Virus record (IMG/VR): IMGVR_UViG_3300033182_000980
Coordinates: 248,001-312,000 of that record
Length of the DNA: 64,000 nucleotides
Direction: 5' to 3' (one strand)
Shown here piece by piece: positions 17,288 to 47,570 of the stretch. How positions within the stretch are numbered: position 1 is the first letter of the stretch; every line of letters starts with the position of its first letter. The notes under the pieces were generated by a model. The model saw nothing but the letters and a program-made list of their open reading frames with translations, was not told where the DNA came from and searched no databases. The translations under genes and the position numbers were made by a program.

Positions 17288-20020
17288 ATGTTTGCCGATA
17301 TGCTTGAGACATTAAGACGACCCGATATAAAGCCCAAGCTGTGGATGAAAGATTGCGAGCTGATCTTGGGTACGAAAGAAAACCTAGATCAGTGCATTGA
17401 TGAGTGTATCAACAGCGTTGCGTATGGGATTGACCTTGAGACAACAGGTCTTGATAATCGTGTGTTCAATGGACGCACACGAGATACGATTGTAGGGGTC
17501 TGCTTGTCAGCCCATAAGGATAAGGGGTACTACTTCCCTGTCGGTCATCAAGAGGGTGTAGAACATAACATCCCTTGGAGGTTGATGTATCCAGCTCTTG
17601 AGCGTCTGTTTGATCTCTCTGTGAAAGCAGAGCCTGTCTTTCACAACGCCGCTTTCGACCAAGAGTTCTTGGAGTTCAACGAGTACAAGTCGGGTCTTGG
17701 TGAGGAGCGTTGGGATTCGTTCAAGTGGCATGACACCTATATCATCCAGTATCTCTTGAACCCTCGTGAAAAGGGAGGTCGAGGACTCAAGCATTTAACG
17801 AATGTTCACCTTGAGCGTGAGATGATTGAGCTGTCTGATCTCATGCCCGATGCCCCCGACAAAAACTACTCTAAGCTCGATGTGAGCTGGGAGCCTTGTG
17901 TTTGGTATGCCGCTAGTGATGCGATGTGTACGCTTGGTCTTTGGGAAATCCTTTATAAGAAGTACACCGAGGCTAAAGAGCATACGCTCTCTATGTATGT
18001 GTTAGAGCGTATGTGTCTGCTCTCAACCCGATGGATGCACAGAAATCGTGTCTACATTGATCGGGACACAGCGTTAAAGTACAGCCAGCAAGGTCAGAAG
18101 TTATGGTTTGACTCTCTGATTGATGTCTATGACGGAGCAAAAGAAATCTTAGGTCGAGACATTACCCCTAACTATGTTCGAGTCCTTAAAGGCGAGTTGA
18201 AGGGCGAGAACAAGTTTAACCACATGGAAGTGGAGGGGATGAGCTATAAGACTCGTGTAGACGAAGCTCGTAAGGAAGCGACTCGTTTATATCCCGATGA
18301 AAAGGGAGTAGTCACTAAGGCTGTGAAGATCATCGGTAAGAGTGCAGGTACAGAGGAGATTGAGTTTCCTTTGACCTATGACATCTTATCCCCTCAAAAG
18401 CTCGGCTTGTTGTTTAGAGAGTTGAGTGTACCAGGTCTTAAGGCGAGTGAAAAGTCGGGGCAAGTCGTAACCTCTAAAGACATTCTTGAAGAGGTCATTG
18501 AGAAGGCATCTGATGACTTTCCATTCATGGCTAAGGTTAAGACCTTTCGTGAGCTTGGAAAGGCTATGGGTCAATACCTCATTCCCTTTGTAGAGGATGT
18601 CGGACAAGACGGTACTCTCAAGCCCAAGTTTGATCAGTTTGCCGCTGACACAGGACGCTTTTCATGTAAGACAAACAGCAAGCCTTGGAAGGTCAAAGAC
18701 GGTGGGTGTCGTGTACCATTTCAAGGTATACCAGCTACCTACGATCCGACTAAGCCCGAAGCTGTGGCTAAGATGCGTTCTTGCGTGGCAGTGCGTGATG
18801 ATGATTGGTGGTTAGCGGCCATTGACTATGCAGGTGTAGAGCTTCGGTTAGTCACAAACTTGAGTCTTGAGCCTAAGTGGATTAAGGCTTTCTTTGAGTG
18901 TTCCGAGTGTGGCACATCTTACCCACAAGAAATCCAAGAGGATGGGTTCGCCAAAGCACCTCCGTCTAACTGTACGAACTGTGGCTCTGATAAGATTGGC
19001 GACTTGCACACGATTACAGCGGTGGCGTTTTATGGTGAGAGTGCTAAGAAGCGTGATGATTGGAAGGCGTTGAGAGGTAATGGTAAGGGTTGCAACTTTG
19101 CTCTGTCTTACGGTGGTACAGGTAAGGCTGTTCAGCGTACCATTGGTTGTTCAGCCGAAGAAGCAGAGGAGAAGTTCAAGAAGTTCACCTCGACTTATAG
19201 TGAGCTGACGAAGTGGTGGTCTAAGCAACACAACTTTGGTCGTAAACATGGTTATGTCAAGACAGGTATGGGTCGTGTTCAGCCATTGCCCGACATCAAC
19301 TCTGATGATTTTAGGTTCAAATCCAAAGATGAGCGTAAGGCTGTTAATGGGCCAGTACAGGGTACGAGTGCAGATGTAACCAAGTTGGCGATGAGCTTCA
19401 TCTACCAAGAGACTAAGAAGCGTGGGTGGCAAGACAAGCTGATGATGATCTTGACCGTCCATGACGAAATCGTCTTTGAGATCCATAAGTCGATCTTGAA
19501 AGAGGCGATTGATATGATCTCCGAGATGATGACTCGCAACAAGGTGATTAAGCGTCTAGGTTGGCGTGTGCCTTTGCTTGTAGATGTTGAGCTTGGTAAG
19601 GATTGGACTGTTCCTTTTGATGTGAAAGATGTAATCGCAGGAGAAGCTGGCGACAAGATCATCAATGCCAAGTACAAGTGCAAGGATTGTGAGGAAAAGA
19701 CACCTCGTGATCCTAAGCCTACGGTTTGTATGCACTGTGGCTCTAGCAACATTAAGTGTGATTACACAGATGAGTTTATTGCCAAGATCAAGAAGCAGAC
19801 CGAACAGCTTTATGCAGACTATGGGGTGAATCCCGATGAGATTGTTAAAGAGGAAGAGGTACCCAATAAGGTTGAGGAAGCTCCCCCAAGCAAGCCTACT
19901 TTCATGCTAGAGTCTTTGACCGAAGATACTGCTAAAGAGCTTGCTGATTGGATTAAAAATCAAGATGGTGAGTATGATGTAGTATATCAAGGTCGTAGTA
20001 TAAATGCTTTACTAGATTGA
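17288..20020 (+). CDS. polA: Family A DNA polymerase with 3'-5' exonuclease domain
   Basis: Exo motifs IDLETTG, FHNAAFD, YAASDA; polymerase motifs AIDYAGVELR (A), RGNGKGCNFALSYGG (B), VHDEI (C); AGGAGGT RBS. Confidence 0.95.
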   Translation: MFADMLETLRRPDIKPKLWMKDCELILGTKENLDQCIDECINSVAYGIDLETTGLDNRVFNGRTRDTIVGVCLSAHKDKGYYFPVGHQEGVEHNIPWRLMYPALERLFDLSVKAEPVFHNAAFDQEFLEFNEYKSGLGEERWDSFKWHDTYIIQYLLNPREKGGRGLKHLTNVHLEREMIELSDLMPDAPDKNYSKLDVSWEPCVWYAASDAMCTLGLWEILYKKYTEAKEHTLSMYVLERMCLLSTRWMHRNRVYIDRDTALKYSQQGQKLWFDSLIDVYDGAKEILGRDITPNYVRVLKGELKGENKFNHMEVEGMSYKTRVDEARKEATRLYPDEKGVVTKAVKIIGKSAGTEEIEFPLTYDILSPQKLGLLFRELSVPGLKASEKSGQVVTSKDILEEVIEKASDDFPFMAKVKTFRELGKAMGQYLIPFVEDVGQDGTLKPKFDQFAADTGRFSCKTNSKPWKVKDGGCRVPFQGIPATYDPTKPEAVAKMRSCVAVRDDDWWLAAIDYAGVELRLVTNLSLEPKWIKAFFECSECGTSYPQEIQEDGFAKAPPSNCTNCGSDKIGDLHTITAVAFYGESAKKRDDWKALRGNGKGCNFALSYGGTGKAVQRTIGCSAEEAEEKFKKFTSTYSELTKWWSKQHNFGRKHGYVKTGMGRVQPLPDINSDDFRFKSKDERKAVNGPVQGTSADVTKLAMSFIYQETKKRGWQDKLMMILTVHDEIVFEIHKSILKEAIDMISEMMTRNKVIKRLGWRVPLLVDVELGKDWTVPFDVKDVIAGEAGDKIINAKYKCKDCEEKTPRDPKPTVCMHCGSSNIKCDYTDEFIAKIKKQTEQLYADYGVNPDEIVKEEEVPNKVEEAPPSKPTFMLESLTEDTAKELADWIKNQDGEYDVVYQGRSINALLD

Positions 20021-20028
20021 GGTTAAAT

Positions 20029-21255
20029 ATGTTTTTTGAGTATGAAAAAAAGAAGTACAACGGAATAGACGATTACACTTGGGTGAGTGGAGGTAAATTA
20101 TTCACACCTGCCCATGAGCTGTCCGAGATCAAATCAAAGTTTACAAGATATGAGATCATACTCAAAATCTGTCAGGTGATATATGACCACCAAATACCAT
20201 TCCCCTATAAAGAGCACAGCGTATCTAAAGCTAAAGGTGAGTTATCTAAGCTCTTTAATACACATTTCCCTGCTGATGAAAGAGAATGGTATTCAGACTT
20301 ATGCGAAGGCATCAAGTGCTTTAAATATAGGGGGGGCTATCTGCGGATAAAGACCAACCACACAGGCACTTATGTCTCTGACCTATTTTGTCATCGTACT
20401 CGATTAAAGGCACAAAAGAAAAGGTACGCTGATGATCGTCTAGGAATGGTAGGTCTTTGGGAGTATCTTTTATCTTACAGGTGCGAGGAGGAGTCTGATA
20501 TAAATACGGTCATGTATATGTTTATCAATGGTATCTTTCACTTTAGCGATAAGATTGACCATACAGCGGTTTACACTTCGGGGAGATTATCTATTGGTAC
20601 TGTAAGTCAATTTAAACCCGCTAGTGCTAAGGCTCTGTACGATTTATTTGGAGCTAAGAATGTACTCGACTTTTGTGCTGGATGGGGGGATAGGCTAGTA
20701 GGATTTCATGCATCCAATGCCGAAACATATATCGGAATTGACCCTAACTCTGATTTGCACCCTCAATATGAAAAGATACATGAGTTTTGTGGCACTGGAA
20801 AAGAAGCAAAGTTCATCTGTTTGCCCGCAGAAGATGTAGATTATTCAGAACTCCGATATGACTTTGTTTTCACATCTCCACCATACTTTGATCTGGAAAT
20901 ATACAATGGAGAAGAGACTCAATCCGTGAAAAGATACCCTAAGATCGACCATTGGTTAAAGGGGTTCTTGTTCAAATCTTTGAGTAAGATTTATGAGTAT
21001 CTAGAAGATGGTGGTAGAATAGCGGTCAATATATCAGACAGTCCAGCAGTGAACATTTTTGTTTGTGAGTCTATGCTAGAGCACATGGAGTCGATAGGTG
21101 CTACTTATGAGGGTACTATAGGTTATGGCCTTGCTCGTAGACCTACCGAGAGTGGGCATAATTATTTAAAAGAAAAGTCTGAGCCTATTTTTATTTGGTC
21201 TAAGGGTGTTGCTCCCGATCCAAATCGACAAACAGATAATTTTTTTGGAGTCTAG
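20029..21255 (+). CDS. DNA amino-methyltransferase (N4-C/N6-A type), paralogue 1
   Basis: LDFCAGWGDR (motif I), YIGIDPN, FTSPPYF (motif IV); start at MFFEYE. Confidence 0.85.
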   Translation: MFFEYEKKKYNGIDDYTWVSGGKLFTPAHELSEIKSKFTRYEIILKICQVIYDHQIPFPYKEHSVSKAKGELSKLFNTHFPADEREWYSDLCEGIKCFKYRGGYLRIKTNHTGTYVSDLFCHRTRLKAQKKRYADDRLGMVGLWEYLLSYRCEEESDINTVMYMFINGIFHFSDKIDHTAVYTSGRLSIGTVSQFKPASAKALYDLFGAKNVLDFCAGWGDRLVGFHASNAETYIGIDPNSDLHPQYEKIHEFCGTGKEAKFICLPAEDVDYSELRYDFVFTSPPYFDLEIYNGEETQSVKRYPKIDHWLKGFLFKSLSKIYEYLEDGGRIAVNISDSPAVNIFVCESMLEHMESIGATYEGTIGYGLARRPTESGHNYLKEKSEPIFIWSKGVAPDPNRQTDNFFGV

Positions 21256-31140: not shown

Positions 31141-31189
31141 TGTCGAGGGCAATGAAGCCCACCAACCACTCCCACTAAGGAGAACAAAA

Positions 31190-31753
31190 ATGACTGCGAC
31201 AGCAACCCCCACCCACTTTGTATGCGACCCTTGCTATGTCCTTCACACTATCGACCCAGAGGGCACTCCCCACTCTGAGGGTCTTTGGGTCAAGAGCTTC
31301 GTTGAGGCTCTTTGCAATGCCGAAGAAGCTGACGACTTTGACGGACACCTCACTTACATGGGACACCCCATCTTTGTGCATAGCACAGCACATGGTGATG
31401 GCTCATACAATGGGTCAGACGGACGCTCTTACTTTGTTGACGCAGGGATCATCGGAGCAATCCCTGTTGAGCTGATCGAGGACGAGGTAGTCCAAGAGAT
31501 GATCAAACAACCTTATGTCCGAGCTGTGAGCATGACCAAGAGTCAACTCGGTATGGCTGACTACTATGAGGGTACTTTCACCTTCTACACAAGTGAGGGC
31601 CGTCTTGAGATCGAGACTGATCCCGAAGAGGAATACAAGTGCGAGGACTGTGGTGAGGAGATCAGCGAGTATGAGTACAACGATGACGCTGTATGTAAGT
31701 GGTGTCGAGCTGACCGAGAGGAGGAGGAGCGAGAGGAGGAAGATGAGGACTAG
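31190..31753 (+). CDS. Phage hypothetical protein with C-terminal Zn ribbon and acidic tail
   Basis: DPCYVL...TAHGDGSY...VDAGIIG motifs; CEDC...CKWC; AAGGAG RBS. Confidence 0.7.
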   Translation: MTATATPTHFVCDPCYVLHTIDPEGTPHSEGLWVKSFVEALCNAEEADDFDGHLTYMGHPIFVHSTAHGDGSYNGSDGRSYFVDAGIIGAIPVELIEDEVVQEMIKQPYVRAVSMTKSQLGMADYYEGTFTFYTSEGRLEIETDPEEEYKCEDCGEEISEYEYNDDAVCKWCRADREEEEREEEDED

Positions 31754-34505: not shown

Positions 34506-34853
34506 TTAAGATTTCCACCAGTCATCGAACGCTCCCCATTCGATCATCTCATATAGGTCAGTAGGGATCGACCCGACACAATCATGGTGAAACCACTCAC
34601 CATTTTGCCTTATACGCCACTTTTTGAGTTCTTCATGTAGGTGGGCTTCCCTCCACCCTAAACCTTCAAAAGAGGCTATAAGGCGAAGCTCATGTGAAGC
34701 ACCTGTTTGGAGTTGCTTGAGTCTCTTCTTAGGGTGCTTGGATCGACCTATCTTAATCATGCCTGTCTTGCTCGCCTGGATGAAGTACAGATAGTCTCCC
34801 TGCTTTCGTTGCTTTTGCTCACGATTTCTATTTAACATTTCTTCTAAGGTCAT
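34506..34853 (-). CDS. T5orf172/MUG113-type GIY-YIG domain protein
   Basis: YLYFIQ...IKIGRSKHPKKRLKQLQTG...EAHLH...GEWF. Confidence 0.85.
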   Translation of the reverse strand: MTLEEMLNRNREQKQRKQGDYLYFIQASKTGMIKIGRSKHPKKRLKQLQTGASHELRLIASFEGLGWREAHLHEELKKWRIRQNGEWFHHDCVGSIPTDLYEMIEWGAFDDWWKS

Positions 34854-34883: not shown

Positions 34884-36059
34884 TTAAAAGAAATAATCAT
34901 CCCTAACCCATTTAGGTTCGGATGTTAAACCCTTACTCCAAATAAAGATCGGCTCACAAGTTGGGAGGTCTGTTTTCTGACCTCCTCGCTCGGACATACG
35001 ATAGCCAATCACACCCTCATAGGTCGCTCCTAAGTTTCTCATGTGTTCAAGCATCGGTGTGCAGATGTCCTCACCTTTTTTATCTGCGATGTTGATTGCT
35101 ATCCTACCACCCTCTTTAAGTACCGACCAGCATTTAGTGAGGGTAGCGAGTAAGAAATCGTTGACCCAATCTTTAAGATCTGGATAACGCTTCCACGATT
35201 GAGTCTCCTCTTGGCTGTACCTCTCGATGTCGAAGTAAGGTGGACTCGTAAATACAAAGTCCACCTTAACATCAGATAGATCAGCATCCTCTGCTGGAGA
35301 GCAAATAAATCGAGTGGTCTTACCTGTATCGCAGAGATTGACGATTTGCTGGTAAGGCTCATGAAGGTTCGTATTAGGATCAATCCCGATATAAGACTCC
35401 GCGTTCGAGGCAAGGAAACCGACAAGCCTATCGCCCCACCCTGCCGAGAAATCTAAGACACTTTTGGCTTGGAACAGATCGTAGAGAGCTTTAGCTGATT
35501 CGGCTTTAAACTGACTTGCCATATATGTGTGCATCTTTAAGGCTCTTCTAAGGGTTTGCTTATTGACTCCACCTCTCTCATAGATGTCTCTCTCACAAAT
35601 GCCAAAGAAGCATCTTAAGAATGAGTTGCTTTTACTGGCATTGACCCACTCATCATAGGGTGAGTTTCCTTGAGTTCGATAGCTACATTTCATCCTCTGT
35701 GATTGGGTAAACAGATTAGAGACAGCCTTACCTTTGTAGTAGCTGTTAAGGTAAACATATTTACCTTGATAGGTTGTGTCTAGGGGTGTAGCTTGGCGAG
35801 GTGCGATCCATTCTTCAAATACGAATGGATCTTCCTTTGCTTTAAGATCATTAAAGTCGTTTATTGCCTGTCCTACTGTGTACTCGGAGTAGGGGTAAGG
35901 CAAAGACTCAATGATGGGTGCGATGTGATCTTTGATCTGTTCCTTAGTGTATGTCTCACGAAGCATACTCCACTCATTAGGGAGTATGTGAATATATCCG
36001 TCTTTGATATACTCAATGTCATCTAGCGACTTGAGTGTGGTTTTATAGTCAAAGTACAT
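34884..36059 (-). CDS. DNA amino-methyltransferase paralogue 2
   Basis: LDFSAGWGDR, FTSPPYF, EPIFIWSKG. Confidence 0.85.
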   Translation of the reverse strand: MYFDYKTTLKSLDDIEYIKDGYIHILPNEWSMLRETYTKEQIKDHIAPIIESLPYPYSEYTVGQAINDFNDLKAKEDPFVFEEWIAPRQATPLDTTYQGKYVYLNSYYKGKAVSNLFTQSQRMKCSYRTQGNSPYDEWVNASKSNSFLRCFFGICERDIYERGGVNKQTLRRALKMHTYMASQFKAESAKALYDLFQAKSVLDFSAGWGDRLVGFLASNAESYIGIDPNTNLHEPYQQIVNLCDTGKTTRFICSPAEDADLSDVKVDFVFTSPPYFDIERYSQEETQSWKRYPDLKDWVNDFLLATLTKCWSVLKEGGRIAINIADKKGEDICTPMLEHMRNLGATYEGVIGYRMSERGGQKTDLPTCEPIFIWSKGLTSEPKWVRDDYFF

Positions 36060-36893
36060 TTAAGCACCTAAATTCCAGAATAGGGTTTTCCCTTTTAACT
36101 TGTATGGATTTTCAGTGATCCACTCCCATGCTTTTTTATCCCAGAGTTTGTTGCAAGGGAATGGGGTTGTGAAGTGATCCATCTCATCGTAGAAATCGTA
36201 CTCGGACTTATAAATCTTGAGGCAAGATGGGACACTTCCTAGATTAGAGATCAGAGCCTTCTCTATAGTCTTAACGCTAGAGGTAGCAACGATTACAATC
36301 TTCTTCCCTTCAAAGTCTGGCTCAAACATAACACCAGCGATGTAGTCAACACCTAAGAACCCTTTAATCAGCCCAACACTTGTAATGCCACTACCCCCTT
36401 CAATGACTAGTGTGTTGTATTCATTCCGAGAGAAGAACTCTTTAGAACGCTCTGTCCAATAGTTGATGTAGACAGGGTGGTTGAACGCATCTGGACACAT
36501 CTGCCAATCGTTTTGAGAAGCTATTTTCTTTGTCTGCGAGGACAAGATAGCTACCATGTTGTGCTTTAAGGGGATCAACTCTCCACCATATAACTCGACC
36601 TTTTTCAGCATCTCTTGAGAGTACGCTTTTGTGTTCGGGTAAGCTATTTTGATGTCATAGCCTAGCTCTTTGCCCCAATAAGCTAACGCCCACCCTGTGT
36701 ACGATCCTCTGACTGTGAGGTGTACAATGGGTTTATCTTTTGTGAAGTAGTCCGAGGCGAGAAGTCTCCTTATGCCTTCAAGTTTCGCCCAAGGGGGGAG
36801 ATCGAGGGAGCCGTTGAGTAGATCATCTCTTTTGACATCGACATTTTTGTGTTTGACTTTGTATGTTTCTACTGGAGTATCAAAGTTTAACAT
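36060..36893 (-). CDS. PLP-dependent fold-type II enzyme (ACC deaminase/D-cysteine desulfhydrase/TrpB-like superfamily)
   Basis: VKRDDLL...WAKLEG (candidate Schiff-base Lys), GSYTGWALA, GGSGITSVG, LFWNLG; start at MLNFDTP. Confidence 0.75.
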   Translation of the reverse strand: MLNFDTPVETYKVKHKNVDVKRDDLLNGSLDLPPWAKLEGIRRLLASDYFTKDKPIVHLTVRGSYTGWALAYWGKELGYDIKIAYPNTKAYSQEMLKKVELYGGELIPLKHNMVAILSSQTKKIASQNDWQMCPDAFNHPVYINYWTERSKEFFSRNEYNTLVIEGGSGITSVGLIKGFLGVDYIAGVMFEPDFEGKKIVIVATSSVKTIEKALISNLGSVPSCLKIYKSEYDFYDEMDHFTTPFPCNKLWDKKAWEWITENPYKLKGKTLFWNLGA

Positions 36894-37791
36894 TGAACAT
36901 CGCCTTTTCTTCAAACTCTATGTCTTTGAGTATTTGGTTGTATATCGCTCTAGTGTCTTTATATGAAGTCCCTGCTAATAAGACTCTTCTGTGTAAGCCC
37001 TTTAAGCCTCCACTTTTCCCTGTGGTGTGGAAGTTGGATCTGTTCGTTTTGTGTTTATCAAAGTATTCTTTATGCGTATGTTCGGTAATGAACCATTTGG
37101 GCTGGATCTTATTACTAGCTGGATTGAGCAGTAGCTGATCCCACAGTAGAGATTTACACAAGGACTCTATTCGGGGTGTGCGAAATGGACACAACACTTC
37201 AATACCCTTACTTTTTAAGAACTGTCTTATCACCCACAGGTTGTGAGGGCTTCCAGAAGGGTACTTTTCTTCTAGCTCTTTCTCGACTAAGTTTTTGAAA
37301 TAGTTATCTAGGGCAACCCTAGACCCTCCTTTTTTGTATGCTCCCCAAAGGCTGTTAACTTTCGCTCCGCTGTGAGCAAACATCGTAGTGTAAAACCCTG
37401 TGATCAGATAGGGTGTGGTCATTTGATTTCTCATGTAAGAATAAGCATGACAAACCTGTGTCTCTATATTCCTCGTTGTGCGTGTGGTCTTAATGACTTC
37501 CTTAACTTCCCTTAACAAGTCATCTCGAATAGGGTCAGAGGGGATGGTAGCCACTTTCAAGGGTAGGTCATAATGCTTTGCTATTTGTTGAGCATACTCA
37601 AGGTCTTTGGAATACTCGCCCTCAATCTCAAAGGTGATCAGCTCTTTTGGCGGCCTTCTTAGCTCTATCATTGTGAACAATAGCATGGAAGAATCTATCC
37701 CACCAGAAAACGAGAGACTAATGTCTTGGGGTAGGTTTCTTACCGAGTCATAGATTGCTTCTTTAAATTCCTGTACCCATGTGTGTGTCAT
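36880..37791 (-). CDS. Asparagine synthetase-like PP-loop ATP pyrophosphatase (synthetase domain only)
   Basis: LSFSGGIDSS PP-loop; DLEYAQQIAKHY, LITG, EVLCPF; no glutaminase domain. Confidence 0.75.
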   Translation of the reverse strand: MTHTWVQEFKEAIYDSVRNLPQDISLSFSGGIDSSMLLFTMIELRRPPKELITFEIEGEYSKDLEYAQQIAKHYDLPLKVATIPSDPIRDDLLREVKEVIKTTRTTRNIETQVCHAYSYMRNQMTTPYLITGFYTTMFAHSGAKVNSLWGAYKKGGSRVALDNYFKNLVEKELEEKYPSGSPHNLWVIRQFLKSKGIEVLCPFRTPRIESLCKSLLWDQLLLNPASNKIQPKWFITEHTHKEYFDKHKTNRSNFHTTGKSGGLKGLHRRVLLAGTSYKDTRAIYNQILKDIEFEEKAMFNVKL

Positions 37792-38470
37792 ATCTTCTCA
37801 TCAACTCTCTTGAGTTTTTTAACTCGTTGTTTTGAGTCCTTACATGACAAGAATGAGCAAACGAGGTTACGAGTCCGAAATCTAAACAGCCACTCTCTTT
37901 ACAGAGGAAATCGCATAGGTCAACGAGAGCCATGTAGTCAGCATATCCAGACTTGGACACAGCTTGGCTTCTAAAGTTAGCTGTTAAGTTAAGTTTCCCA
38001 CCTCTAGGTTTCAAGTCGATTGTCAGTAAGCAAGGCATACCGCCCATAACCTTTTTACCATCCGACTGAGGATCATATACACCAATGACAATCGTTTTAG
38101 CTTGCTTGTTTTCCCTTAGCCTCTTAATCGCCTGCTCGATTTGATTGAAGCCTCCGTTCCAAGAAATCATTCGCCCCCAATAACTATTCGTCCATTTCCC
38201 CTCTTTGTTCTGCTGATACTCTAACATCTGTGGGAACAACATATTAGGTTCTGGCTTCACAAAGGTAACAGACTTAGCATAGTCGATACGCTCATCTCCA
38301 AAGATGTCTCTAAACTCTTTATCAAACACAGGGCAGACCTCGGAGGATTTGATCTCTATACCCATGTTTAAAATCTCATAAAGACCTCCCATATTCATGC
38401 CTTTGTCAAGGATGTCTTGAGTCGCTTTGACCCATGCTTCTGCACAGTTGTTTGCTGTTATGTGATACAT
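37763..38470 (-). CDS. Thymidylate synthase/dCMP hydroxymethylase-fold protein (divergent, cytosine-type Asp)
   Basis: YWGR, NQIEQAIKRL, MPCL (catalytic Cys), FRSQAVSKSGYADY, HSCH. Confidence 0.8.
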   Translation of the reverse strand: MYHITANNCAEAWVKATQDILDKGMNMGGLYEILNMGIEIKSSEVCPVFDKEFRDIFGDERIDYAKSVTFVKPEPNMLFPQMLEYQQNKEGKWTNSYWGRMISWNGGFNQIEQAIKRLRENKQAKTIVIGVYDPQSDGKKVMGGMPCLLTIDLKPRGGKLNLTANFRSQAVSKSGYADYMALVDLCDFLCKESGCLDFGLVTSFAHSCHVRTQNNELKNSRELMRRYDTHMGTGI

Positions 38471-38473: not shown

Positions 38474-39679
38474 CTACACTCCAAAGAAGTTGTCTTGATG
38501 CCATTTAGGTTCGGGAGCTTCACCCTTACTCCAGATAAAGATCGGTTCGCAAAACACATCTATCTTCGACAACTCATCGTTTAAGGAATGGTGATTGCCT
38601 GGCCTCTTAGACATACGATAACCCATGACTCCTTCATAGGTTGCCCCTAGTGAGTCCATGTACTCGATCATGGGCTGACATACTCGTATGTCTCCTCTTA
38701 CTTTATCCGAGATGTTCACGCATATACGACCCCCATCTTCTAAAGCGTCCCAACATTTTTTTAGAGTCGGGTAGAGGAAGCCATTAAGCCAGTCATCTGT
38801 ATCTGGATAACGCTTCCATGATTGCGTGTCCTCTTGGCTGTACTTCTCGGTATCAAAGTAAGGTGGACTAGTGAATACAAAGTCTACTTTAACATCGGAT
38901 AGATCAGCATCCTCTGCCGGCGAACAGATAAACCGAGTGGACTTATTCGTAGAACAATAATCAGCGATCTTCTGATAAGGTTCATGGAGCTTAGTGTTAG
39001 GGTCTAGTCCGACATAAGACTCCGCATCCGAGGCTAAAAACCCAACTAACCTGTCGCCCCACCCCATAGAGAAATCTAAGACTCGTTTAGCTCCGAAGAA
39101 GTTATACATAGCCTTAGCTAAGGTAGGCTTAAACTGAGCTGGAATATATCCAGACATACCGATAGCGTTTACAAGTATCTTGCTATTCACACCCTTTGAC
39201 GGATCGTATAGTGTCCATAGAGGTCTAAGGAACGCTCTCTTTTTGGACTTGAGGTCTGTTCGAGTCCATTGCCTCATTGCACTTGGGAACTGCTTATGAT
39301 CAACCTCTAAACGCATAGGCTCACTATATTGGTTAGACACCTTGAGTCCTTTGTTATTAGGGGCGAAGTAAAGATACCTCCCTTGATAGGTATGGGGCTG
39401 ATCTATCTCGCACCGAGGCAACCCCCACTCTCCCTCAATCGGGGTCATGTAATCGGATTGAACCTCTAGCCAGTCTTTCTTGATCTCTTGAGGAGTGTAC
39501 TTAGTGAATGGGTAAGGTAGCCCTTCAATCTTTGCCGACAGGTAGTCTGTGATCTCATCTCTACTAAAGTTATCTACCATCTCTAACCACTGATGCGGTG
39601 GTATAAAGATTTCTTGTCCGCTCACAACAGCATAATCTTCAAGACTATCTTTTTTGGTTTTTTCATAATCAAAGAACAT
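38474..39679 (-). CDS. DNA amino-methyltransferase paralogue 3
   Basis: LDFSMGWGDR, FTSPPYF; near-duplicate of 40876..42081. Confidence 0.85.
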   Translation of the reverse strand: MFFDYEKTKKDSLEDYAVVSGQEIFIPPHQWLEMVDNFSRDEITDYLSAKIEGLPYPFTKYTPQEIKKDWLEVQSDYMTPIEGEWGLPRCEIDQPHTYQGRYLYFAPNNKGLKVSNQYSEPMRLEVDHKQFPSAMRQWTRTDLKSKKRAFLRPLWTLYDPSKGVNSKILVNAIGMSGYIPAQFKPTLAKAMYNFFGAKRVLDFSMGWGDRLVGFLASDAESYVGLDPNTKLHEPYQKIADYCSTNKSTRFICSPAEDADLSDVKVDFVFTSPPYFDTEKYSQEDTQSWKRYPDTDDWLNGFLYPTLKKCWDALEDGGRICVNISDKVRGDIRVCQPMIEYMDSLGATYEGVMGYRMSKRPGNHHSLNDELSKIDVFCEPIFIWSKGEAPEPKWHQDNFFGV

Positions 39680-39708: not shown

Positions 39709-40872
39709 TTATACTCCAAAGTAGTTATCTTGATGCCACTTAGGTTCTGGAGCTTCCCCTTTACTCCAAATAAAGATCGGTTCGCAGAATACCTCTCCTA
39801 GATTCATTCCGTTTCGCTTTTGCATCTTGTAGCCAATGACACCTTCATAGGTAGCCCCTAATCTCTCCATGTGGTCAATCATTGGCGAACAGATGTCTAA
39901 TCCTTTTTTGTCGGCTATGTTGATTGCTATCCGACCACCTTCTTCTAACGCTTCATAACACTTAGTAAGCGTGGGTAGCAGAAATGATTTAATCCACTGT
40001 TGAGGATTTCTGTATCGTTTCCACGATTGCGTATCTTCATCGCTATATCTTTCTATGTCGAAGTAAGGGGGGCTTGTAAAAACGAAGTCTACTTTAACAT
40101 CGGATAGATCAGCATCCTCTGCTGGAGAACAGATAAATCGAGTCTCCTTGTTCGTATCGCAGAAGCGTACAATCTGTCCATAAGGCTCATGGAGCTGGGT
40201 ATTAGGATCAATGCCGATATAGGACTCGGCATTGGAGGCGAGGAAGCCAACTAACCTATCGCCCCAACCAGCAGAGAAATCTAAAACCCGTTTAGCTCCG
40301 AAGAAGTTATATAAGGCGAGGGCAGTCTCTGGTTTAAACTGACTTGCCATATAGGTGTGCATCTTTAAGGCTCGGTACAGGACGCTGTTATTAAGCCCAC
40401 TTGCCTTGACCTCATCTTTAAGTATTCCAAACAGACACCTCAAAAATGAGCTTGGCTTGTTTGGGTGTTGCCATTCAAACATCGGGGAGTTTCCGTTATG
40501 GTATCCACAACACATCCTCTGCACTTGAGTAAACTGATTGGAGACTTTTTGACCCTTATTACTTGGCGTAAAGTATAAGGCTCTACCCTTATAAGTAAGC
40601 TCTATTGCTTCTGTTTGTCTTGGTGCGTTCCAAGTACCCAAAGTGTATGTAGGGGTAGCACCTTGAACTTGTGACCAGTCGCCTTGCGTTTCAAGTTCAA
40701 GGTATCTTCGTAGAGGGAAGGGCTTATCTTTTATGATCTCGGTTAAGTGTTGTTTTATCTCTTGGTCAGAGTAAAACTTTTTAAGGGCTTCCCAGTCCGA
40801 TGGTTTGCAGGACACAGTATCTGTGAAATACTCTGATATATCTTTCTTTTCGATCTCATAGTCAAAGAACAT
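39709..40872 (-). CDS. DNA amino-methyltransferase paralogue 4
   Basis: LDFSAGWGDR, FTSPPYF; closest to 34884..36059. Confidence 0.85.
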   Translation of the reverse strand: MFFDYEIEKKDISEYFTDTVSCKPSDWEALKKFYSDQEIKQHLTEIIKDKPFPLRRYLELETQGDWSQVQGATPTYTLGTWNAPRQTEAIELTYKGRALYFTPSNKGQKVSNQFTQVQRMCCGYHNGNSPMFEWQHPNKPSSFLRCLFGILKDEVKASGLNNSVLYRALKMHTYMASQFKPETALALYNFFGAKRVLDFSAGWGDRLVGFLASNAESYIGIDPNTQLHEPYGQIVRFCDTNKETRFICSPAEDADLSDVKVDFVFTSPPYFDIERYSDEDTQSWKRYRNPQQWIKSFLLPTLTKCYEALEEGGRIAINIADKKGLDICSPMIDHMERLGATYEGVIGYKMQKRNGMNLGEVFCEPIFIWSKGEAPEPKWHQDNYFGV

Positions 40873-40875: not shown

Positions 40876-42081
40876 TCATACCCCAAAGTAGTTATCTTGA
40901 TGCCATTTAGGTTCGGGTGCTTCCCCCTTACTCCAAATGAAGATAGGCTCACAGAATATATCTACCTTAGCCAGCTCATCGTTTAAGGAATGGTGATTAC
41001 CTGGCCTCTTAGACATACGATAGCCCATCACCCCCTCATAGGTTGCTCCTAGTGAGTCCATGTACTCAATCATAGGTTGGCACACCCTAACATCTCCATG
41101 TACTTTGTCGGAGATGTTTACACAGATACGACCTCCTTCTTCTAAAGCGTCCCAACACTTCTTGAGCGTTGGGTAGAGGAAACCTTTAAGCCAGTCATCT
41201 GTTTCTGGATATCGCTTCCAACTCTGTGTATCTTCTTGACTGTACTTTTCGGTATCAAAGTATGGTGGGCTGGTAAATACAAAATCAACTTTAACATCGG
41301 ATAGGTCAGCATCTTCCGCAGGGGAACAGATGAACCTCGTTTTCTTATTGGTGTTGCAATAAGCCTCTATCTGTCCATAAGGTTCATGGAGCTTGGTATT
41401 AGGGTCAATCCCGACATAAGACTCTGCATCAGAAGCTAAGAATCCGACTAACCGATCACCCCAACCCATAGAGAAATCTAGCACCCTTTTAGCTCCGAAG
41501 AAGTTATACATGGCTTTGGCTAGAGTAGGCTTGAACTGAGCCGGTATGTAATAAGACATATTAATGGCGTTATAGAGCATCTTGCTGTTAACCCCTTTCG
41601 ACCTATCGTATAGGGTGAAGAAGGGTCTTAGGAAGTATCTCTTGTCGCCCTTCATCCCTATGCGAGTCCATTGAGTGATGGCACTTTTATATTGTAGGTG
41701 GTCAACCTCTAAACGCATAGGCTCGGTGAACTGATTAGATACCTTGAGTCCTTTGTTATTAGGAGCGAAATAAAGATACTTACCTTGATAAGTATGAGAC
41801 TCATCTATCTCACAGCGTGGTAATCCCCATTCTCCCTCAATCGGAGTCATGTAATCAGATTGAACCTCTAGCCAGTCACGATGTACCTCTTGGGGAGTGT
41901 ACTTGGTATATGGGAAAGGCAGACCTTCAATCTTAGTAGATAAGTAAGTGATGATCTCATCACGAGTGAACTTATCTAGCATCTGTGACCATTCGTGAGG
42001 GGGTATAAAGATTTCTTGTCCTCTTACGACTTCATATTCTTCTATGTTGTCTTTGGCTTTCTTTTCATATTCAAAAAACAT
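40876..42081 (-). CDS. DNA amino-methyltransferase paralogue 5
   Basis: LDFSMGWGDR, FTSPPYF. Confidence 0.85.
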   Translation of the reverse strand: MFFEYEKKAKDNIEEYEVVRGQEIFIPPHEWSQMLDKFTRDEIITYLSTKIEGLPFPYTKYTPQEVHRDWLEVQSDYMTPIEGEWGLPRCEIDESHTYQGKYLYFAPNNKGLKVSNQFTEPMRLEVDHLQYKSAITQWTRIGMKGDKRYFLRPFFTLYDRSKGVNSKMLYNAINMSYYIPAQFKPTLAKAMYNFFGAKRVLDFSMGWGDRLVGFLASDAESYVGIDPNTKLHEPYGQIEAYCNTNKKTRFICSPAEDADLSDVKVDFVFTSPPYFDTEKYSQEDTQSWKRYPETDDWLKGFLYPTLKKCWDALEEGGRICVNISDKVHGDVRVCQPMIEYMDSLGATYEGVMGYRMSKRPGNHHSLNDELAKVDIFCEPIFIWSKGEAPEPKWHQDNYFGV

Positions 42082-45187: not shown

Positions 45188-46354
45188 TTATACGCCAAAA
45201 AAATTATCTTGTTGCCACTTGGGTTCGGGGGGGTTAGACCCCTTACTCCAAACAAAAATAGGTTCCGCTACATTCTCCTTTACACCCTGTCGTGGAGATA
45301 GCGGATAGCCAATCGAACCTTCATAGGTTAAACCTAAAGACCTAGCGTGTTCTAAAAGAGGAGTGCTGACCACCACTTTCTTCCCTTTCCACATGAAGTC
45401 GCTGATGTTAATCGCTATCCTCCCATTCTCTTTTAGAGACTCCACTATGAGTGAGACGGTCTTGAGTAAAAACTCATTTAGCCACAGGTCAAAGTCTTGA
45501 TAGCGGGAAGAAGACTGGGTGTCCTCATCGGAGTAAATCTCTAGGTTGAAGTATGGTGGGGATGTGAAAACGAAGTCATACTCAAGCGATGAGAAGTCCA
45601 CATCTTCCGAGGGGGAGCAGAGAAGCCTAACCTCTTTATCGGGAGCATACGCATTATGTATCTGACGATAAGGTTCATGTAGCTTAGTGTTAGGGTCTAT
45701 CCCTATGTAAGATTCAGCATCCGAGGCTAAGAAGCCGACAAGCCGATCACCCCAACCAGCCGAGAAATCTAAGACGCTCTTAGCTCCGAAAAAGTCATAC
45801 AGGTGCTTTGCACAGTTGGGCTTAAACTGTGTGAGCGTTCGTATGGTTCTTTCATTTGAGAAGGCGTGTATGATTGAGCTTCTGCTCAACTTAGGCTTCA
45901 TAAAGAGTCCTGTTAGTCTTGAGAAGTCATTTTCTTTTCTTTTACCTTGTTCCCAGTAATCTATGGGAGATAGGCCATTTGAGTATCTCCCCTCATGTCT
46001 TGCCTTGATCATGTACTTGCTAGACAACCGATTATAAATAGAAGTGTTTGGTGAAAGTTGTAAGTAAGACCCTTTGTAGAGAGGGTCGGTGTCGGAGTAA
46101 AGGCTTACCCAAGGTCCTTTGATGATCTGTGGTTTGTCATTCTTCAAACTGCGGAAGAGGCTGTTTAGGTCGCAGTTGATCTCTGCAAATGGGAAAGGTG
46201 AGTCAAGCTCTATAACCTTGTCTCGTATGAAGACTAAGACATCTTTCCTATCGTAGTTGTCTTTAATGTACTCCCAATCTTCTTTAGGGCAGTATGGGAA
46301 TCCATCTTTTGACCCTATCAATCCCCCAAGGGTTTTATCGACCTCAAAGAACAT
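45188..46354 (-). CDS. DNA amino-methyltransferase paralogue 6
   Basis: LDFSAGWGDR, FTSPPYF; start at MFFEVD (46354), 1 nt after the upstream stop. Confidence 0.85.
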   Translation of the reverse strand: MFFEVDKTLGGLIGSKDGFPYCPKEDWEYIKDNYDRKDVLVFIRDKVIELDSPFPFAEINCDLNSLFRSLKNDKPQIIKGPWVSLYSDTDPLYKGSYLQLSPNTSIYNRLSSKYMIKARHEGRYSNGLSPIDYWEQGKRKENDFSRLTGLFMKPKLSRSSIIHAFSNERTIRTLTQFKPNCAKHLYDFFGAKSVLDFSAGWGDRLVGFLASDAESYIGIDPNTKLHEPYRQIHNAYAPDKEVRLLCSPSEDVDFSSLEYDFVFTSPPYFNLEIYSDEDTQSSSRYQDFDLWLNEFLLKTVSLIVESLKENGRIAINISDFMWKGKKVVVSTPLLEHARSLGLTYEGSIGYPLSPRQGVKENVAEPIFVWSKGSNPPEPKWQQDNFFGV

Positions 46355-46355
46355 A

Positions 46356-47570
46356 CTAAACCCCGAAAAAGTTGTCTTGGTTATACTTAGGTTCGGGTGC
46401 TTCCCCTTTAGACCAAATGAAAATAGGTTCAGAAGATGTGTTCTTCTCGCCATTGGGTAAGGGTCTATTTGAAAGACCATACCCTATCACCCCCTCATAA
46501 GTCGCACCTAGCGATTCCATATGTTTGAGTAAATCTTTACAGATGAACACCTTAAAATTAGGGTTGTCTGATATGTTGATCGCAATCCGACCTCCTACTT
46601 TAAGGCTTTGATATACCTTAGTAAGCGTCTTAAAAAGAAACCCATCTAACCACAGATCAAGATTGGGGTATCTGATGATTGATTGAGTCTCTTCTTTTGT
46701 GTAGGACTCTATGTTAAAGTAAGGGGGTGAGGTTAAAACAAAGTCATAATCTAGCTCGGTATAATCGACATCTTCTGCGGGGCTACAGATAAAGTTTGCT
46801 TCTTTTCCGGTGCCACAAAACTCATGTATCTGTTGATAAGGTTCATGTAGCTTTGTATTAGGGTCAATCCCGATATACGAGTCGGCATTAGACGCATGAA
46901 ATCCAACCAAACGATCACCCCATCCAGCACAAAAATCTAAGATCCTCTTAGCCCCGAAGAAGTCATAAATGCCTTTAGCTGTAGAGGGTTTAAATTGAGA
47001 TACCGAACCACAGCCTAGCCGACCCGCAGTATATACTGCATCTTTGTTTAGTTTGTCGTTGAGGAATACAAACGCACTTAAAAAGTTCAGAGTAGGTGAA
47101 TCGTACTGTGAGGGATGAAACTCATCTTGTTTCATGTGATTCCATACACCAACTATACCCTCATACTTACCCGCCCTCCGTTGGTTTTGAGCTTTTAATC
47201 TTTCCTCGTGTGTGAACTGATCAGAGATTTTTGTTCCAGCAACGGCCGAAAAGACCCATTGGTTACCTTTATATGTGAAGTCTTTAATCTCACACTTTTG
47301 AGTGCTCCACTCCCTCTCAACAGGGGAGTAGTAGCTAGACTTTAACTGATTGAACAGAGCTTTGCACTCGATACGAGAAAAGGTCTTCAAAGGAAAGTCT
47401 ATTTGGTGCTCATGGATTAGCTTGTAGATATGAACATATATCTGTTTTCGTGCAAACTTTGCTTTGATCTCATCAAAGTCTTCCTTACAAACTTCAAAGA
47501 ATCCATCTTTTATCCACACATAATCATCTAGGGAGGTTCTTACCTGTTTTTTTTCATAGTCAAAGAACAT
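46356..47570 (-). CDS. DNA amino-methyltransferase paralogue 7
   Basis: LDFCAGWGDR, LTSPPYF; closest to 20029..21255. Confidence 0.85.
   Translation of the reverse strand: MFFDYEKKQVRTSLDDYVWIKDGFFEVCKEDFDEIKAKFARKQIYVHIYKLIHEHQIDFPLKTFSRIECKALFNQLKSSYYSPVEREWSTQKCEIKDFTYKGNQWVFSAVAGTKISDQFTHEERLKAQNQRRAGKYEGIVGVWNHMKQDEFHPSQYDSPTLNFLSAFVFLNDKLNKDAVYTAGRLGCGSVSQFKPSTAKGIYDFFGAKRILDFCAGWGDRLVGFHASNADSYIGIDPNTKLHEPYQQIHEFCGTGKEANFICSPAEDVDYTELDYDFVLTSPPYFNIESYTKEETQSIIRYPNLDLWLDGFLFKTLTKVYQSLKVGGRIAINISDNPNFKVFICKDLLKHMESLGATYEGVIGYGLSNRPLPNGEKNTSSEPIFIWSKGEAPEPKYNQDNFFGV

Follow-up and report, generated by a model that had tools for sequence, protein, structure and literature searches.

Genes at the locus

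We analyzed a 64,000-nt window (positions 248,001 to 312,000) of the IMG/VR record IMGVR_UViG_3300033182_000980, a 375-kb jumbo-phage contig. Three overlapping minus-strand genes of the window encode a thymidylate-synthase (TS)-fold protein, a glutaminase-less Asn-synthetase-type PP-loop ligase and a fold-type-II PLP enzyme. They are situated among seven paralogous genes for SPPY methyltransferases (Table 1). The observation made in the first-pass annotation, namely that such a trio lies nested among methyltransferases, was confirmed. None of the three genes contains an in-frame stop. The mechanical ORF call places the start of the PLP gene at 36914 (a TTG), but homologs start at its Met8 and therefore the ATG at 36893 is the more probable start. 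The TS and ligase genes overlap by 29 nt, whereas the ligase and PLP genes overlap by 14 nt (35 nt with the TTG start).

Table 1. Features of the locus (window coordinates; MT_a to MT_g denote the methyltransferase paralogs)
Coordinates	Strand	Feature	Remarks
37763..38470	-	Predicted TS-fold enzyme of a new clade	235 aa; Cys147, Arg167-Ser168, Asp178 (the N177D position) and His209 kept; Ala170 at the folate-binding Asp169 position
36880..37791	-	Asn-synthetase-family PP-loop ATP-dependent amide ligase (predicted)	303 aa; no glutaminase domain; SGGIDS at residues 29-34
36060..36893	-	Fold-type-II PLP enzyme (predicted), homolog of the M6 gp52 / ViI gp226 DNA-adduct decarboxylases	Probable start; Lys44 (ORF numbering) is the Schiff-base lysine
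38474..39679	-	SPPY amino-methyltransferase paralog MT_b	Directly upstream of the TS gene; motif I FSMGWGDR, motif IV TSPPYF
34884..36059	-	SPPY amino-methyltransferase paralog MT_a	Directly downstream of the PLP gene
39709..40872	-	SPPY methyltransferase paralog MT_c
40876..42081	-	SPPY methyltransferase paralog MT_d
45188..46354	-	SPPY methyltransferase paralog MT_e	Probable start; the mechanical ORF runs to 46480, but paralogs start at the internal MFF
46356..47570	-	SPPY methyltransferase paralog MT_f
20017..21255	+	SPPY methyltransferase paralog MT_g	Next to the DNA polymerase gene

The domain assignments are supported by Pfam. Thymidylat_synt (PF00303; 1.6e-6, 27.9 bits against a cut-off of 24.3) and Asn_synthase (2.6e-8) score above their cut-offs. 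The ligase has no GATase domain and, in addition, gives weak matches to QueC, PAPS_reduct, TilS and MnmA. PALP scores just below its cut-off (2.5e-7), but PHROG 7093 matches the PLP protein at 7e-24. The methyltransferases match N6_N4_Mtase (PF01555) with 26.5-33.5 bits against a cut-off of 26.7 (6.7e-8 for MT_b). The motifs DFSxGWGDR and TSPPYF are invariant in the seven paralogs and in 24 relatives, and only annotations of distant relatives name N4-cytosine as the target. Single-sequence searches of the PDB with the three proteins of the trio produced only marginal hits, and a family profile was needed for the TS protein.

The cassette lies among replication and nucleotide-metabolism genes (DnaB, SNF2 and PolA in the window; RNR, thioredoxin and PolB in relatives). 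The window also encodes a large CCA-adding/poly(A) polymerase-like protein and has no tRNA genes. In agreement with the first-pass annotation, we detected no 5-hmdU DNA kinase, aGPT-Pplase or glycosyltransferase among about 50 ORFs of the window, a set that did not include every small ORF. Searches for the 5-hmdU DNA kinase and the amino-acid:DNA transferase with M6 gp51 and gp54 (tblastn against the window and blastp against all 1472 proteins of the related loci) gave no hit, and the M6 radical-SAM isomerase (gp53) likewise has no detectable relatives in the window or the related loci.

Conservation of the gene set

To find out whether the trio is more than a chance arrangement, we searched for the TS clade with a profile and compared gene neighborhoods. 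The same gene order recurs in 78 viral loci and 4 further contigs. Among 13 TS lineages (clusters at 70% identity), 11 carry the ligase, 11 the methyltransferase (next to the TS gene) and 8 the PLP enzyme, while the other five carry a B12-type radical-SAM enzyme. Many of the loci are related phages, and therefore these counts are not fully independent. The same four-gene unit occurs in three MAG contigs, in one case beside an excisionase-like gene on a 3.28-Mb contig, and in locus L102. A lack of synteny elsewhere had been set beforehand as a condition that would refute the proposed pathway, yet the trio is syntenic well beyond close relatives. The junctions are tight. TS to ligase is +1 nt or overlapping in 66 of 67 loci, and ligase to PLP overlaps by 10 nt in 54 of 63.

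In one further protein (P0127), a complete TS domain is joined to a complete radical-SAM domain with CX3CX2C. Two other apparent fusions were rejected. The 710-aa TS~GATase~AsnS protein of locus L092, at first read as a Rosetta-stone fusion, lacks the C-terminal helix of the TS domain and the first ~14 residues of the glutaminase, including the catalytic Cys1. It is an in-frame deletion and was not used as evidence. The 484-aa 'fusion' in locus L023 is a GIY-YIG homing-endonuclease ORF running in frame into the TS gene. The PLP and radical-SAM enzymes are not strictly exclusive either, as two loci (L034 and L059) have both, so that a shared role can be argued only as a tendency.

Megablast of the 7.4-kb region against 50 697 phage records found nothing, and no cultured phage in this collection carries the TS clade. 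A scan of GTDB species genomes gave only three true hits, and the host assignment is therefore weak. Literature searches found no paper describing the cassette.

A distinct clade of predicted TS-fold proteins

The AlphaFold model of the TS-fold protein (pLDDT 92) matches 396 PDB entries in a Foldseek search at E<=0.001. At the top are the CMP hydroxymethylase MilA (1.4e-12), the phage HY126 dCMP hydroxylase 9iqc (6e-12) and many TS entries. No paper was found under the code 9IQC, but the enzyme could be identified from the Foldseek description and PMC13326640. The best NCBIfam hit is the methanogen-type thymidylate synthase model (5e-19), below its cut-off.

Alignment with E. coli ThyA and T4 gp42, both taken from database records, reproduced the earlier alignment by eye. 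It gives RSQAVSKSGYAD at residues 167-178, which places Cys147 at C146, Arg167-Ser168 at R166-S167, Ala170 at D169 and Asp178 at N177. AKT (124-126) falls at SRR and HVR (209-211) at HxY. We then examined these positions in 89 unique family members. C146, R166, S167, H207 and N177D are invariant. The D169 position is Arg in 74 members, Ala in 14 and Thr in 1; it is never the Asp of folate enzymes or the Asn of flavin 5-hydroxy-dCMP synthases. It is also Arg or Ala in all 13 closest 50% clusters of 1.84 billion representatives. The R126 position is an invariant Lys, the R127 position is Arg in 54 members and the Y209 position is not conserved. The AKT and HVR details noted in the first-pass annotation are specific to this lineage, whereas the family-wide signature is Arg or Ala at D169. 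The L143 position, which is acidic in folate-dependent dCMP hydroxymethylases (PMC13326640), is Gly, Ser or Lys and never acidic. The identity of residue 169 has been shown to track product chemistry, with Asp in folate enzymes and Asn in flavin hydroxylases (PMC13326640).

The ligase, PLP enzyme and methyltransferases

The nearest cultured-phage homolog of the window's ligase is Staphylococcus phage vB-SscS-F1 gp67 (26% identity, E 1e-8). It lies between CmoA and a C5 DNA methyltransferase, the position of CmoY, the DNA 5-carboxymethylcytosine amide ligase that is the precedent for DNA-borne carboxylates (PMC12783734). Neither CmoA nor a C5 methyltransferase was found in the window or the related loci. 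The neighbors of the ligase in a protein atlas are short viral Asn-synthase proteins, some of them fused to a C5 methyltransferase. The window protein has only the PP-loop, with neither a glutaminase domain nor the AsnB SGEGSDE motif. In contrast, most relatives carry a full AsnB-like, glutamine-dependent enzyme of 501 aa with an active-looking glutaminase domain starting MCGI, including Cys1, and with a synthetase domain that has the PP-loop and SGEGSDE. The two ligase types replace each other in otherwise syntenic loci, which suggests the same acyl substrate with different amines.

The PLP protein is a full-length homolog of phage M6 gp52, the decarboxylase of DNA-borne amino-acid adducts (PMC8989533). 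The two share 29% identity over 99% of the length (tblastn, E 2e-18; 2e-22 at best), and blastp of M6 gp52 hits all 69 cassette PLP proteins. Lys44 aligns with the Schiff-base lysine of M6 gp52 (Lys36; PMC8989533) and is invariant, although at this level of identity the reaction specificity within fold type II could differ.

The model of MT_b has a pLDDT of 89, and its catalytic half resembles the tRNA/rRNA m2G enzymes Trm11, RlmKL and TrmN. However, these matches cover only the generic Rossmann half (TM about 0.35).

A proposed cytosine hypermodification pathway

In our view, the three genes, together with the SPPY methyltransferase family, form a conserved phage operon that most likely hypermodifies cytosine at C5 in the phage's own DNA, yielding a still unknown, amino-acid-like, amidated decoration. 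We put the probability of this reading at roughly 0.55. The analysis itself establishes the conserved gene set and its tight order, the retention of the covalent-catalysis and phosphate-binding residues and of the cytosine-selecting Asp alongside loss of the folate-binding Asp, and the membership of the PLP protein and of the ligase in the M6 gp52 family and the Asn-synthetase/CmoY family of carboxylate-adenylating amide ligases, respectively. The reactions, including decarboxylation by the PLP enzyme, amide formation by the ligase and action of the methyltransferases on DNA, are inferred from homology and synteny only. In this scheme, the TS-fold enzyme would add its cysteine to C6 of dCMP before replication, making C5 nucleophilic, and would install a group other than methyl, hydroxymethyl or hydroxyl. 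The Arg and Lys that line the former folate pocket suggest an anionic, carboxyl-bearing partner or an amino acid. The side chain would be or become an amino-acid-like moiety, formed or trimmed by the PLP enzyme (the only tested relatives decarboxylate) or, in sister lineages, by the B12-type radical-SAM enzyme instead or as well. The ligase would adenylate the carboxylate of the side chain and convert it to an amide, with ammonia from glutamine in most lineages and with an unidentified external amine in that of the window. The SPPY methyltransferases would N-methylate an amino or amide nitrogen, either of the decorated base or of cytosine N4/adenine N6 in particular sequence contexts, and their variable N-terminal domains would explain the many paralogs. 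The expected role is protection of phage DNA from host nucleases.

There are several difficulties with this scheme. The 501-aa ligase of most relatives scores above the NCBI cut-off for genuine asparagine synthase (287 versus 267 bits) and could simply make asparagine. If the PLP enzyme only decarboxylates and the ligase amidates, they compete for one carboxylate, unless the side chain has two or the steps are ordered in a way that we cannot deduce. Without a kinase or aGPT-Pplase, nothing in the data shows how an amino acid would be attached. Finally, the structural similarity of the methyltransferase to RNA m2G enzymes means that an RNA or small-molecule target is not excluded.

The interpretation offered in the first-pass annotation is supported in part. 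Its outline, an undescribed route in which a cytosine is modified at C5 by an atypical TS-fold enzyme, amidated through an adenylating ligase and tailored by a PLP enzyme, holds only on the evidence of synteny and of homology to M6 gp52 and to CmoY-position proteins. However, the methyltransferases are co-conserved members of the cassette rather than just neighbors, and a radical-SAM enzyme replaces or joins the PLP enzyme in sister lineages. The requirement for an external amine does not extend to most relatives, whose ligase has its own glutaminase domain; the common reaction is therefore probably amidation of a carboxylate with ammonia, the window's ligase being a swapped-in variant. The suggestion that the TS-fold enzyme acts on DNA or on an unusual sugar is not supported by anything we could test. 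Arg166, Ser167 and a basic residue at R126 are kept. Isoelectric points did not discriminate DNA binding from nucleotide-level action.

Alternative explanations all appear unlikely. The cassette might make a free modified cytosine nucleotide or a peptidyl-nucleoside-like small molecule, for example an inhibitor or signal used during infection. Cytosine nucleoside antibiotic pathways (mildiomycin, blasticidin S) also combine a TS-fold CMP hydroxymethylase with radical-SAM, PLP, amide-forming and N-methylating enzymes. The closest solved structure to the TS-fold protein is indeed MilA of mildiomycin biosynthesis, the cassette has a similar set of parts (TS, radical SAM and/or PLP, ligase and N-methyltransferase), and the phosphate-binding residues suit a mononucleotide. 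On the other hand, no nucleotide hydrolase, glycosyltransferase or export gene was seen beside the cassette, the only characterized relatives of the PLP enzyme act on DNA, and the nearest relatives of the ligase sit in DNA-modification clusters and are sometimes fused to C5 DNA methyltransferases. Up to seven methyltransferase paralogs with variable N-terminal domains also fit polymer sequence recognition better than a single small molecule. Modification of RNA, for example of host or phage tRNA cytidines or uridines, is even less likely. It would agree with the structural neighbors of the methyltransferase, with the frequent occurrence of PP-loop ATPases in tRNA modification and the weak TilS, QueC and MnmA hits of the ligase, with the CCA-adding/poly(A) polymerase-like protein and with the ribonucleotide substrate of MilA. 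Yet no TS-fold enzyme is known to act on RNA, the window has no tRNA genes, the neighbors are DNA replication and dNTP-synthesis genes, and the PLP and ligase relatives of known function act on DNA.

It is similarly improbable that the genes are unrelated auxiliary metabolic genes (a thymidylate synthase, an asparagine synthetase and a threonine dehydratase or cysteine-synthase-like enzyme) accompanied by ordinary anti-restriction DNA methylases. Database names ('thymidylate synthase', 'threonine dehydratase'), the asparagine synthase score of the 501-aa homolog and the NCBIfam hit of the TS protein point in this direction. Against it stand the fixed gene order with overlapping coding regions across 13 lineages, the TS~radical-SAM fusion, the features of the window's ligase and the replacement of Asn177 by Asp together with loss of the folate-binding Asp throughout the clade, which argues against dTMP synthesis. 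Moreover, the PLP protein matches cysteine synthases in the PDB only at E 0.03.

A more speculative possibility, unlikely on present evidence but not excluded, is that the clade with Arg or Ala at the folate-Asp position catalyzes a reaction new to this superfamily, joining C5 of dCMP directly to a non-folate, carboxylate-bearing electrophile or to an amino acid. The cassette would then finish a diphthamide-like side chain (amino-acid-derived, amidated, N-methylated) on cytosine. This would be a new natural DNA base, made by a route independent of both the kinase/aGPT-Pplase route and the Cx-SAM route.

Phage DNA hypermodifications decide whether restriction enzymes, CRISPR nucleases and sequencing chemistries can read phage DNA, and each new pathway has yielded new enzymology. 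Position 169 of TS homologs was shown in 2026 to predict the product, Asp indicating one-carbon transfer and Asn flavin-dependent hydroxylation. A third state (Arg or Ala), locked into an operon with an amide ligase, a PLP or radical-SAM enzyme and an amino-methyltransferase, points to a further, unknown cytosine derivative, and new chemistry is likely. The genes are short, and the cassette is widespread, occurring in large and jumbo phages from many aquatic metagenomes and in a probable prophage of Kapaibacteria/Ignavibacteria. An unrecognized base could explain poor amplification or sequencing of such phages.

Comparison with known systems

The thymidine hypermodification pathways of phages M6 and ViI comprise a dUMP hydroxymethylase, a 5-hmdU DNA kinase, an aGPT-Pplase amino-acid:DNA transferase, a radical-SAM isomerase and a PLP decarboxylase (PMC8989533). 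The cassette likewise combines a TS-fold enzyme with a PLP enzyme of the same family and lies among replication genes, and radical-SAM, GNAT and amidoligase-type tailoring genes combine in varied ways in relatives. It differs in having no detected kinase or aGPT-Pplase, in the cytosine-type Asp and the missing folate Asp of the TS-fold enzyme, in radical-SAM enzymes not detectably related to M6 gp53, and in having an Asn-synthetase-type ligase and SPPY methyltransferases as core members. With the CmoA/CmoX/CmoY 5-carboxymethylcytosine system of Synechococcus phage S-B43 and relatives (PMC12783734) it shares an Asn-synthetase-family ATP-dependent amide ligase attached to a cytosine C5 modification module, with ligase variants both with and without a glutaminase domain. 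Here, however, C5 activation would be performed by a TS-fold enzyme instead of the C5 (SPPC) DNA methyltransferase, and a PLP and/or radical-SAM enzyme is added.

The TS-fold dCMP-modifying enzymes, namely the T4 gp42 and MilA hydroxymethylases and the flavin-dependent 5-hydroxy-dCMP synthases (RB69 gp48, DLP3 gp80 and HY126 AfhB; PMC13326640, PDB 9iqc and 9iqu), share with the new clade the fold, the catalytic Cys, Arg166-Ser167, the N177D cytosine signature and a short C-terminus. The clade departs from them at position 169 (Arg or Ala, not Asp or Asn) and at position 143 (Gly or Ser, not Asp or Glu), in the loss of the Tyr209 sugar contact and in deletion of the R21 loop, and no glycosyltransferase follows the TS gene. 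Finally, by analogy of logic only, the parts list (a radical-SAM or PLP enzyme, an amino-methyltransferase and a PP-loop amidating enzyme) matches that of diphthamide biosynthesis, in which radical-SAM-type amino-carboxypropyl transfer is followed by N-methylation and then by PP-loop ATP-dependent amidation, although the substrate there is a protein histidine and no TS-fold enzyme is involved.

Gene organization of the window

The three genes named in the first-pass annotation were confirmed, as its coordinates bracket exactly three minus-strand ORFs encoding a TS-fold protein, an Asn-synthetase-family PP-loop protein and a PLP enzyme. Pfam supports all three assignments, and the ligase has no glutaminase domain. 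Homologues of the PLP protein begin at its eighth residue, and therefore the real start is probably the ATG at 36893, which is preceded by AAGG. The TS gene starts 3 nt after the stop codon of the upstream methyltransferase gene, behind a GGAG. The TS and ligase genes overlap by 29 nt, and the ligase and PLP genes by 14 nt. The coordinates of these and other features discussed below are collected in the table.

The window is part of IMG/VR contig IMGVR_UViG_3300033182_000980 (375 691 bp), a jumbo phage with PolA, DnaB and SNF2 genes. It has no close relative among 50 697 deposited phage genomes. The gamma-glutamyl cyclotransferase-like ORF (matching the PHROG family of this name at 3e-11) lies 11 kb from the cassette, and a link to amino-acid-derived DNA modification is conceivable. 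The ORF immediately downstream of the last methyltransferase of the block matches PHROG families of unknown function at about 1e-14 and an endonuclease family at 3e-6, suggesting that it may be a homing endonuclease. Although one large protein, with two PolyA_pol head domains and two PolyA_pol RNA-binding domains, looks like a tandemly duplicated CCA-adding or poly(A) polymerase-like enzyme, ARAGORN finds no tRNA gene in the window. The family-A DNA polymerase has extra zinc-ribbon-like segments (HypA-like at residues 794-833 and MCM_OB-like at 529-571), and a similar HypA-like ribbon is present in a separate ORF, but all these hits are below their cut-offs.

Coordinates of cassette genes and other features in the window and in related loci
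Sequence	Coordinates	Strand	Length (aa)	Feature
Window	37763-38470	-	235	TS-fold protein
Window	36880-37791	-	303	Asn-synthetase-family PP-loop ligase
Window	36060-36914	-		PLP-enzyme ORF
Window	20017-21255	+		SPPY methyltransferase paralogue
Window	34884-36059	-		SPPY methyltransferase paralogue
Window	38474-39679	-		SPPY methyltransferase paralogue
Window	39709-40872	-		SPPY methyltransferase paralogue
Window	40876-42081	-		SPPY methyltransferase paralogue
Window	45188-46480	-		SPPY methyltransferase paralogue; ORF with a spurious 42-residue N-terminal extension that overlaps the next gene
Window	46356-47570	-		SPPY methyltransferase paralogue
Window	9901-12747	-	948	CCA-adding or poly(A) polymerase-like protein
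Window	24836-25312	-	158	Gamma-glutamyl cyclotransferase-like ORF
Window	34506-34853	-	115	Possible homing endonuclease
Window	17279-20020	+		Family-A DNA polymerase
Window	31052-31753	+	233	ORF with a HypA-like ribbon
Locus L102	7088-9118		676	Protein P0127, TS~radical-SAM fusion
Locus L092	10001-12133		710	TS~GATase~Asn-synthetase ORF
Locus L055 (also L056, L057)	8766-9938		390	ABC-type ATPase~GNAT protein
Locus L100 (CALNXW010000016.1)	6635-10898			Cassette (methyltransferase, TS, ligase, radical SAM)
Locus L026	14837-15655			Glycoside hydrolase family 6 protein

Active-site residues of the TS-fold protein

To examine the residue assignments that the first-pass annotation had made by eye, we aligned E. 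coli thyA and T4 gene 42 products, taken from annotated records, with members of the family. The hand alignment proved to be right. Cys147 of the window protein corresponds to C146 of E. coli ThyA, Arg167-Ser168 to R166-S167, Ala170 to D169, Asp178 to N177, Ala-Lys-Thr 124-126 to S125-R126-R127 and His209-Val-Arg211 to H207-x-Y209. In addition, the R21 loop is deleted and the C-terminal segment that closes over folate is absent. A census of 89 unique family members refined this picture. The Cys, Arg166, Ser167, His207 and the Asp at the N177 position are invariant. The R126 position is always Lys, the R127 position is Arg in 54 members, and the Y209 position is not conserved. The D169 position is Arg in 74, Ala in 14 and Thr in 1, but never Asp or Asn. 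The L172 and P175 positions are occupied by an invariant Lys and Tyr, respectively.

The AlphaFold model of the protein is confident (pLDDT 92). Its best PDB matches are MilA (a CMP hydroxymethylase) and the flavin-dependent dCMP hydroxylase of phage HY126, in agreement with the profile search. It was shown in 2026 that position 169 tracks chemistry in viral TS homologues, being Asp in folate-dependent enzymes and Asn in 5-hydroxy-dCMP synthases (PMC13326640). The window's clade is neither. In an exhaustive search of 1.84 billion representatives only 13 clusters match at E<=1e-30, and all of them have Arg or Ala at that position, while more distant short TS homologues keep Asp.

Conservation of gene order

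A word-based protein search found at least 181 relatives of the TS protein, and the genomic contexts retrieved for distant members (44-50% identity) showed the same neighbours. We then performed a profile scan of IMG/VR, which gave 78 loci. ORFs in these loci were called, clustered and labelled with HMMs built from the window's proteins. Among the 13 TS clusters at 70% identity, the Asn-synthetase-type ligase is present in 11, the SPPY methyltransferase in 11 and the PLP enzyme in 8, while the other 5 have a B12-type radical-SAM enzyme. The commonest order is methyltransferase, TS, ligase, PLP. Two loci carry both the radical-SAM and the PLP enzyme. The junction between TS and ligase is +1 nt or overlapping in 66 of 67 loci, and ligase and PLP overlap by 10 nt in 54 of 63. 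That the trio should be found syntenic elsewhere had been set beforehand as a test of the idea, and it is. Moreover, the methyltransferase should be counted as a fourth member of the cassette.

A scan of GTDB species genomes found only three true hits (loci L098, L099 and L100), on MAG contigs of Ignavibacteria and Kapaibacterium. Each has methyltransferase, TS, ligase and radical SAM in a row. One of them, L100, sits on a chromosome-sized 3.28-Mb contig next to an excisionase-like HTH_17 gene and is probably a prophage, which also suggests a possible host group.

Two long ORFs at first sight represent fusions of cassette components. One representative, P0127, is a complete TS-clade domain fused to a complete B12-type radical-SAM domain with its CX3CX2C motif. 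In its contig (L102) it is preceded by a methyltransferase (583 aa) and a ligase (296 aa) and followed by a RecA-like gene. In contrast, the second apparent fusion (locus L092) is an in-frame deletion that removes the last helix of the TS domain and the catalytic Cys1 of the glutaminase. The protein is probably defective or the ORF is an assembly artefact, and we do not count it. In locus L023 a GIY-YIG/NUMOD3 endonuclease ORF runs in frame into the TS gene.

Additional genes accompany the cassette in some of the loci. In L055, L056 and L057 a protein with an ABC-type ATPase N-terminal half and a GNAT acetyltransferase C-terminal half is inserted between the methyltransferase and the TS gene. 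In L014 and L047 a plain GNAT and a conserved 326-357-aa protein of unknown function accompany the ligase. These may represent further tailoring steps, such as N-acetylation of an amine. In one phage lineage (L026) a glycoside hydrolase family 6 (cellulase-type) protein (Pfam 1.7e-43) is encoded four genes downstream of the cassette.

The PLP enzyme

A tblastn search against phage genomes gave 65 records, all with at least 80% coverage, led by Pseudomonas phage M6 and its relatives (29% identity, E 2e-18). The M6 gene is gp52, which was shown biochemically to be a PLP-dependent decarboxylase that converts C-alpha-glycinylthymidine in DNA to 5-aminoethyl-dU; ViI gp226 does the same with O-serinylthymidine (PMC8989533). 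M6 gp52 matches all 69 cassette PLP proteins, and its predicted Schiff-base Lys36 aligns with the invariant Lys44 of the window's ORF. The other M6 components (aGPT-Pplase gp51, radical-SAM gp53 and kinase gp54) have no detectable counterpart in the window or the related loci.

The ligase

The window's protein has the PP-loop SGGIDS but lacks SGEGSDE of AsnB. Its best hit in cultured phages is gp67 of Staphylococcus phage vB-SscS-F1. The corresponding gene lies between a CmoA homologue (TIGR00740, 9e-49) and a C5 DNA methyltransferase. This is the arrangement described for CmoA/CmoY/CmoX, in which CmoY ligates glycine to DNA 5-carboxymethylcytosine (PMC12783734). Atlas neighbours of the window's ligase are short viral Asn-synthase proteins, some of them fused to C5 methyltransferases.

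Three ligase types occupy the same position in the cassette. One is a 501-aa AsnB-like enzyme that starts with MCGI (a predicted active Ntn glutaminase), keeps SGEGSDE and matches E. coli AsnB at 1e-39. The other two are the window's type (297-308 aa) and a CmoY-like type (271-285 aa, 33-36% identical to F1 gp67). The first two types replace each other in loci that are otherwise syntenic and belong to one TS cluster. The simplest reading is that there is one carboxylate substrate and different amines, namely ammonia from glutamine in most lineages and an as yet unidentified amine in the window's lineage.

The methyltransferases

Each of the seven paralogues in the 64-kb window (about 390-410 aa) has motif I (DFSxGWGDR) and motif IV (TSPPYF), and four of them directly flank the trio. 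Their catalytic halves are near-identical, whereas the N-terminal ~170 residues diverge. Related phages carry two to five such genes. The structural model (pLDDT 89) matches known structures only through the Rossmann half, with Trm11, RlmKL and TrmN, (D/N)PPY enzymes methylating guanine N2 in RNA, coming first. The function can be assigned only at the level of amino-group methyltransferases, without specifying the nitrogen. Distant relatives are annotated as N4-cytosine DNA methylases.

Possible pathway and alternative explanations

The analysis itself establishes the conserved, tightly coupled gene set, the retained Cys, phosphate and cytosine residues of the TS-fold enzyme together with its rebuilt cosubstrate pocket, and the family membership of the PLP enzyme and the ligase. 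The reactions are inferred. In this view, the TS-fold enzyme would activate C5 of dCMP and install something other than methyl, hydroxymethyl or hydroxyl, and its Arg/Lys-rich pocket would suit an anionic partner. An amino-acid-like side chain would be formed or trimmed by the PLP and/or radical-SAM enzyme, and the ligase would turn its carboxylate into an amide. The methyltransferases would N-methylate it, or methylate neighbouring exocyclic amines in particular sequence contexts. The route put forward in the first-pass annotation, modification of a cytosine derivative at C5 followed by ligation to an amine or amino acid and tailoring by the PLP enzyme, is partly supported, its outline holding on homology and synteny only.

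Two more specific schemes fit the parts, and sequence alone does not allow choosing between them. One resembles the thymidine pathways, in which an amino-acid adduct is made, then decarboxylated and amidated. However, if the PLP enzyme only decarboxylates, it and the ligase would compete for one carboxylate unless the side chain has two, and this remains a problem for the scheme. The other resembles diphthamide synthesis, with amino-carboxyalkyl transfer, amidation and N-methylation.

It might be argued that the cassette makes a free nucleoside-type small molecule, since the parts list recalls cytosine peptidyl-nucleoside pathways and MilA is the closest structure. The genes might also be unrelated auxiliary metabolic genes, considering that the 501-aa ligase homologue passes the asparagine-synthase cut-off, or they might target RNA, because the nearest solved structures of the methyltransferase are RNA enzymes. 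Although none of these possibilities is excluded, the fixed operon structure, the TS~radical-SAM fusion, the active-site changes and the DNA-acting relatives of the PLP enzyme and the ligase argue against each of them.

Relationship to known hypermodification systems

Full-text literature searches found no description of this cassette. The nearest statements are that amidoligase and glutamine amidotransferase genes of unknown role occur in thymidine-hypermodification contigs (PMC8989533), and that CmoY homologues, some with glutaminase domains, accompany CmoX (PMC12783734). From sequence evidence, we place the cassette within phage pyrimidine hypermodification built on a TS homologue plus tailoring enzymes, as a variant that includes a TS clade whose chemistry may be new.
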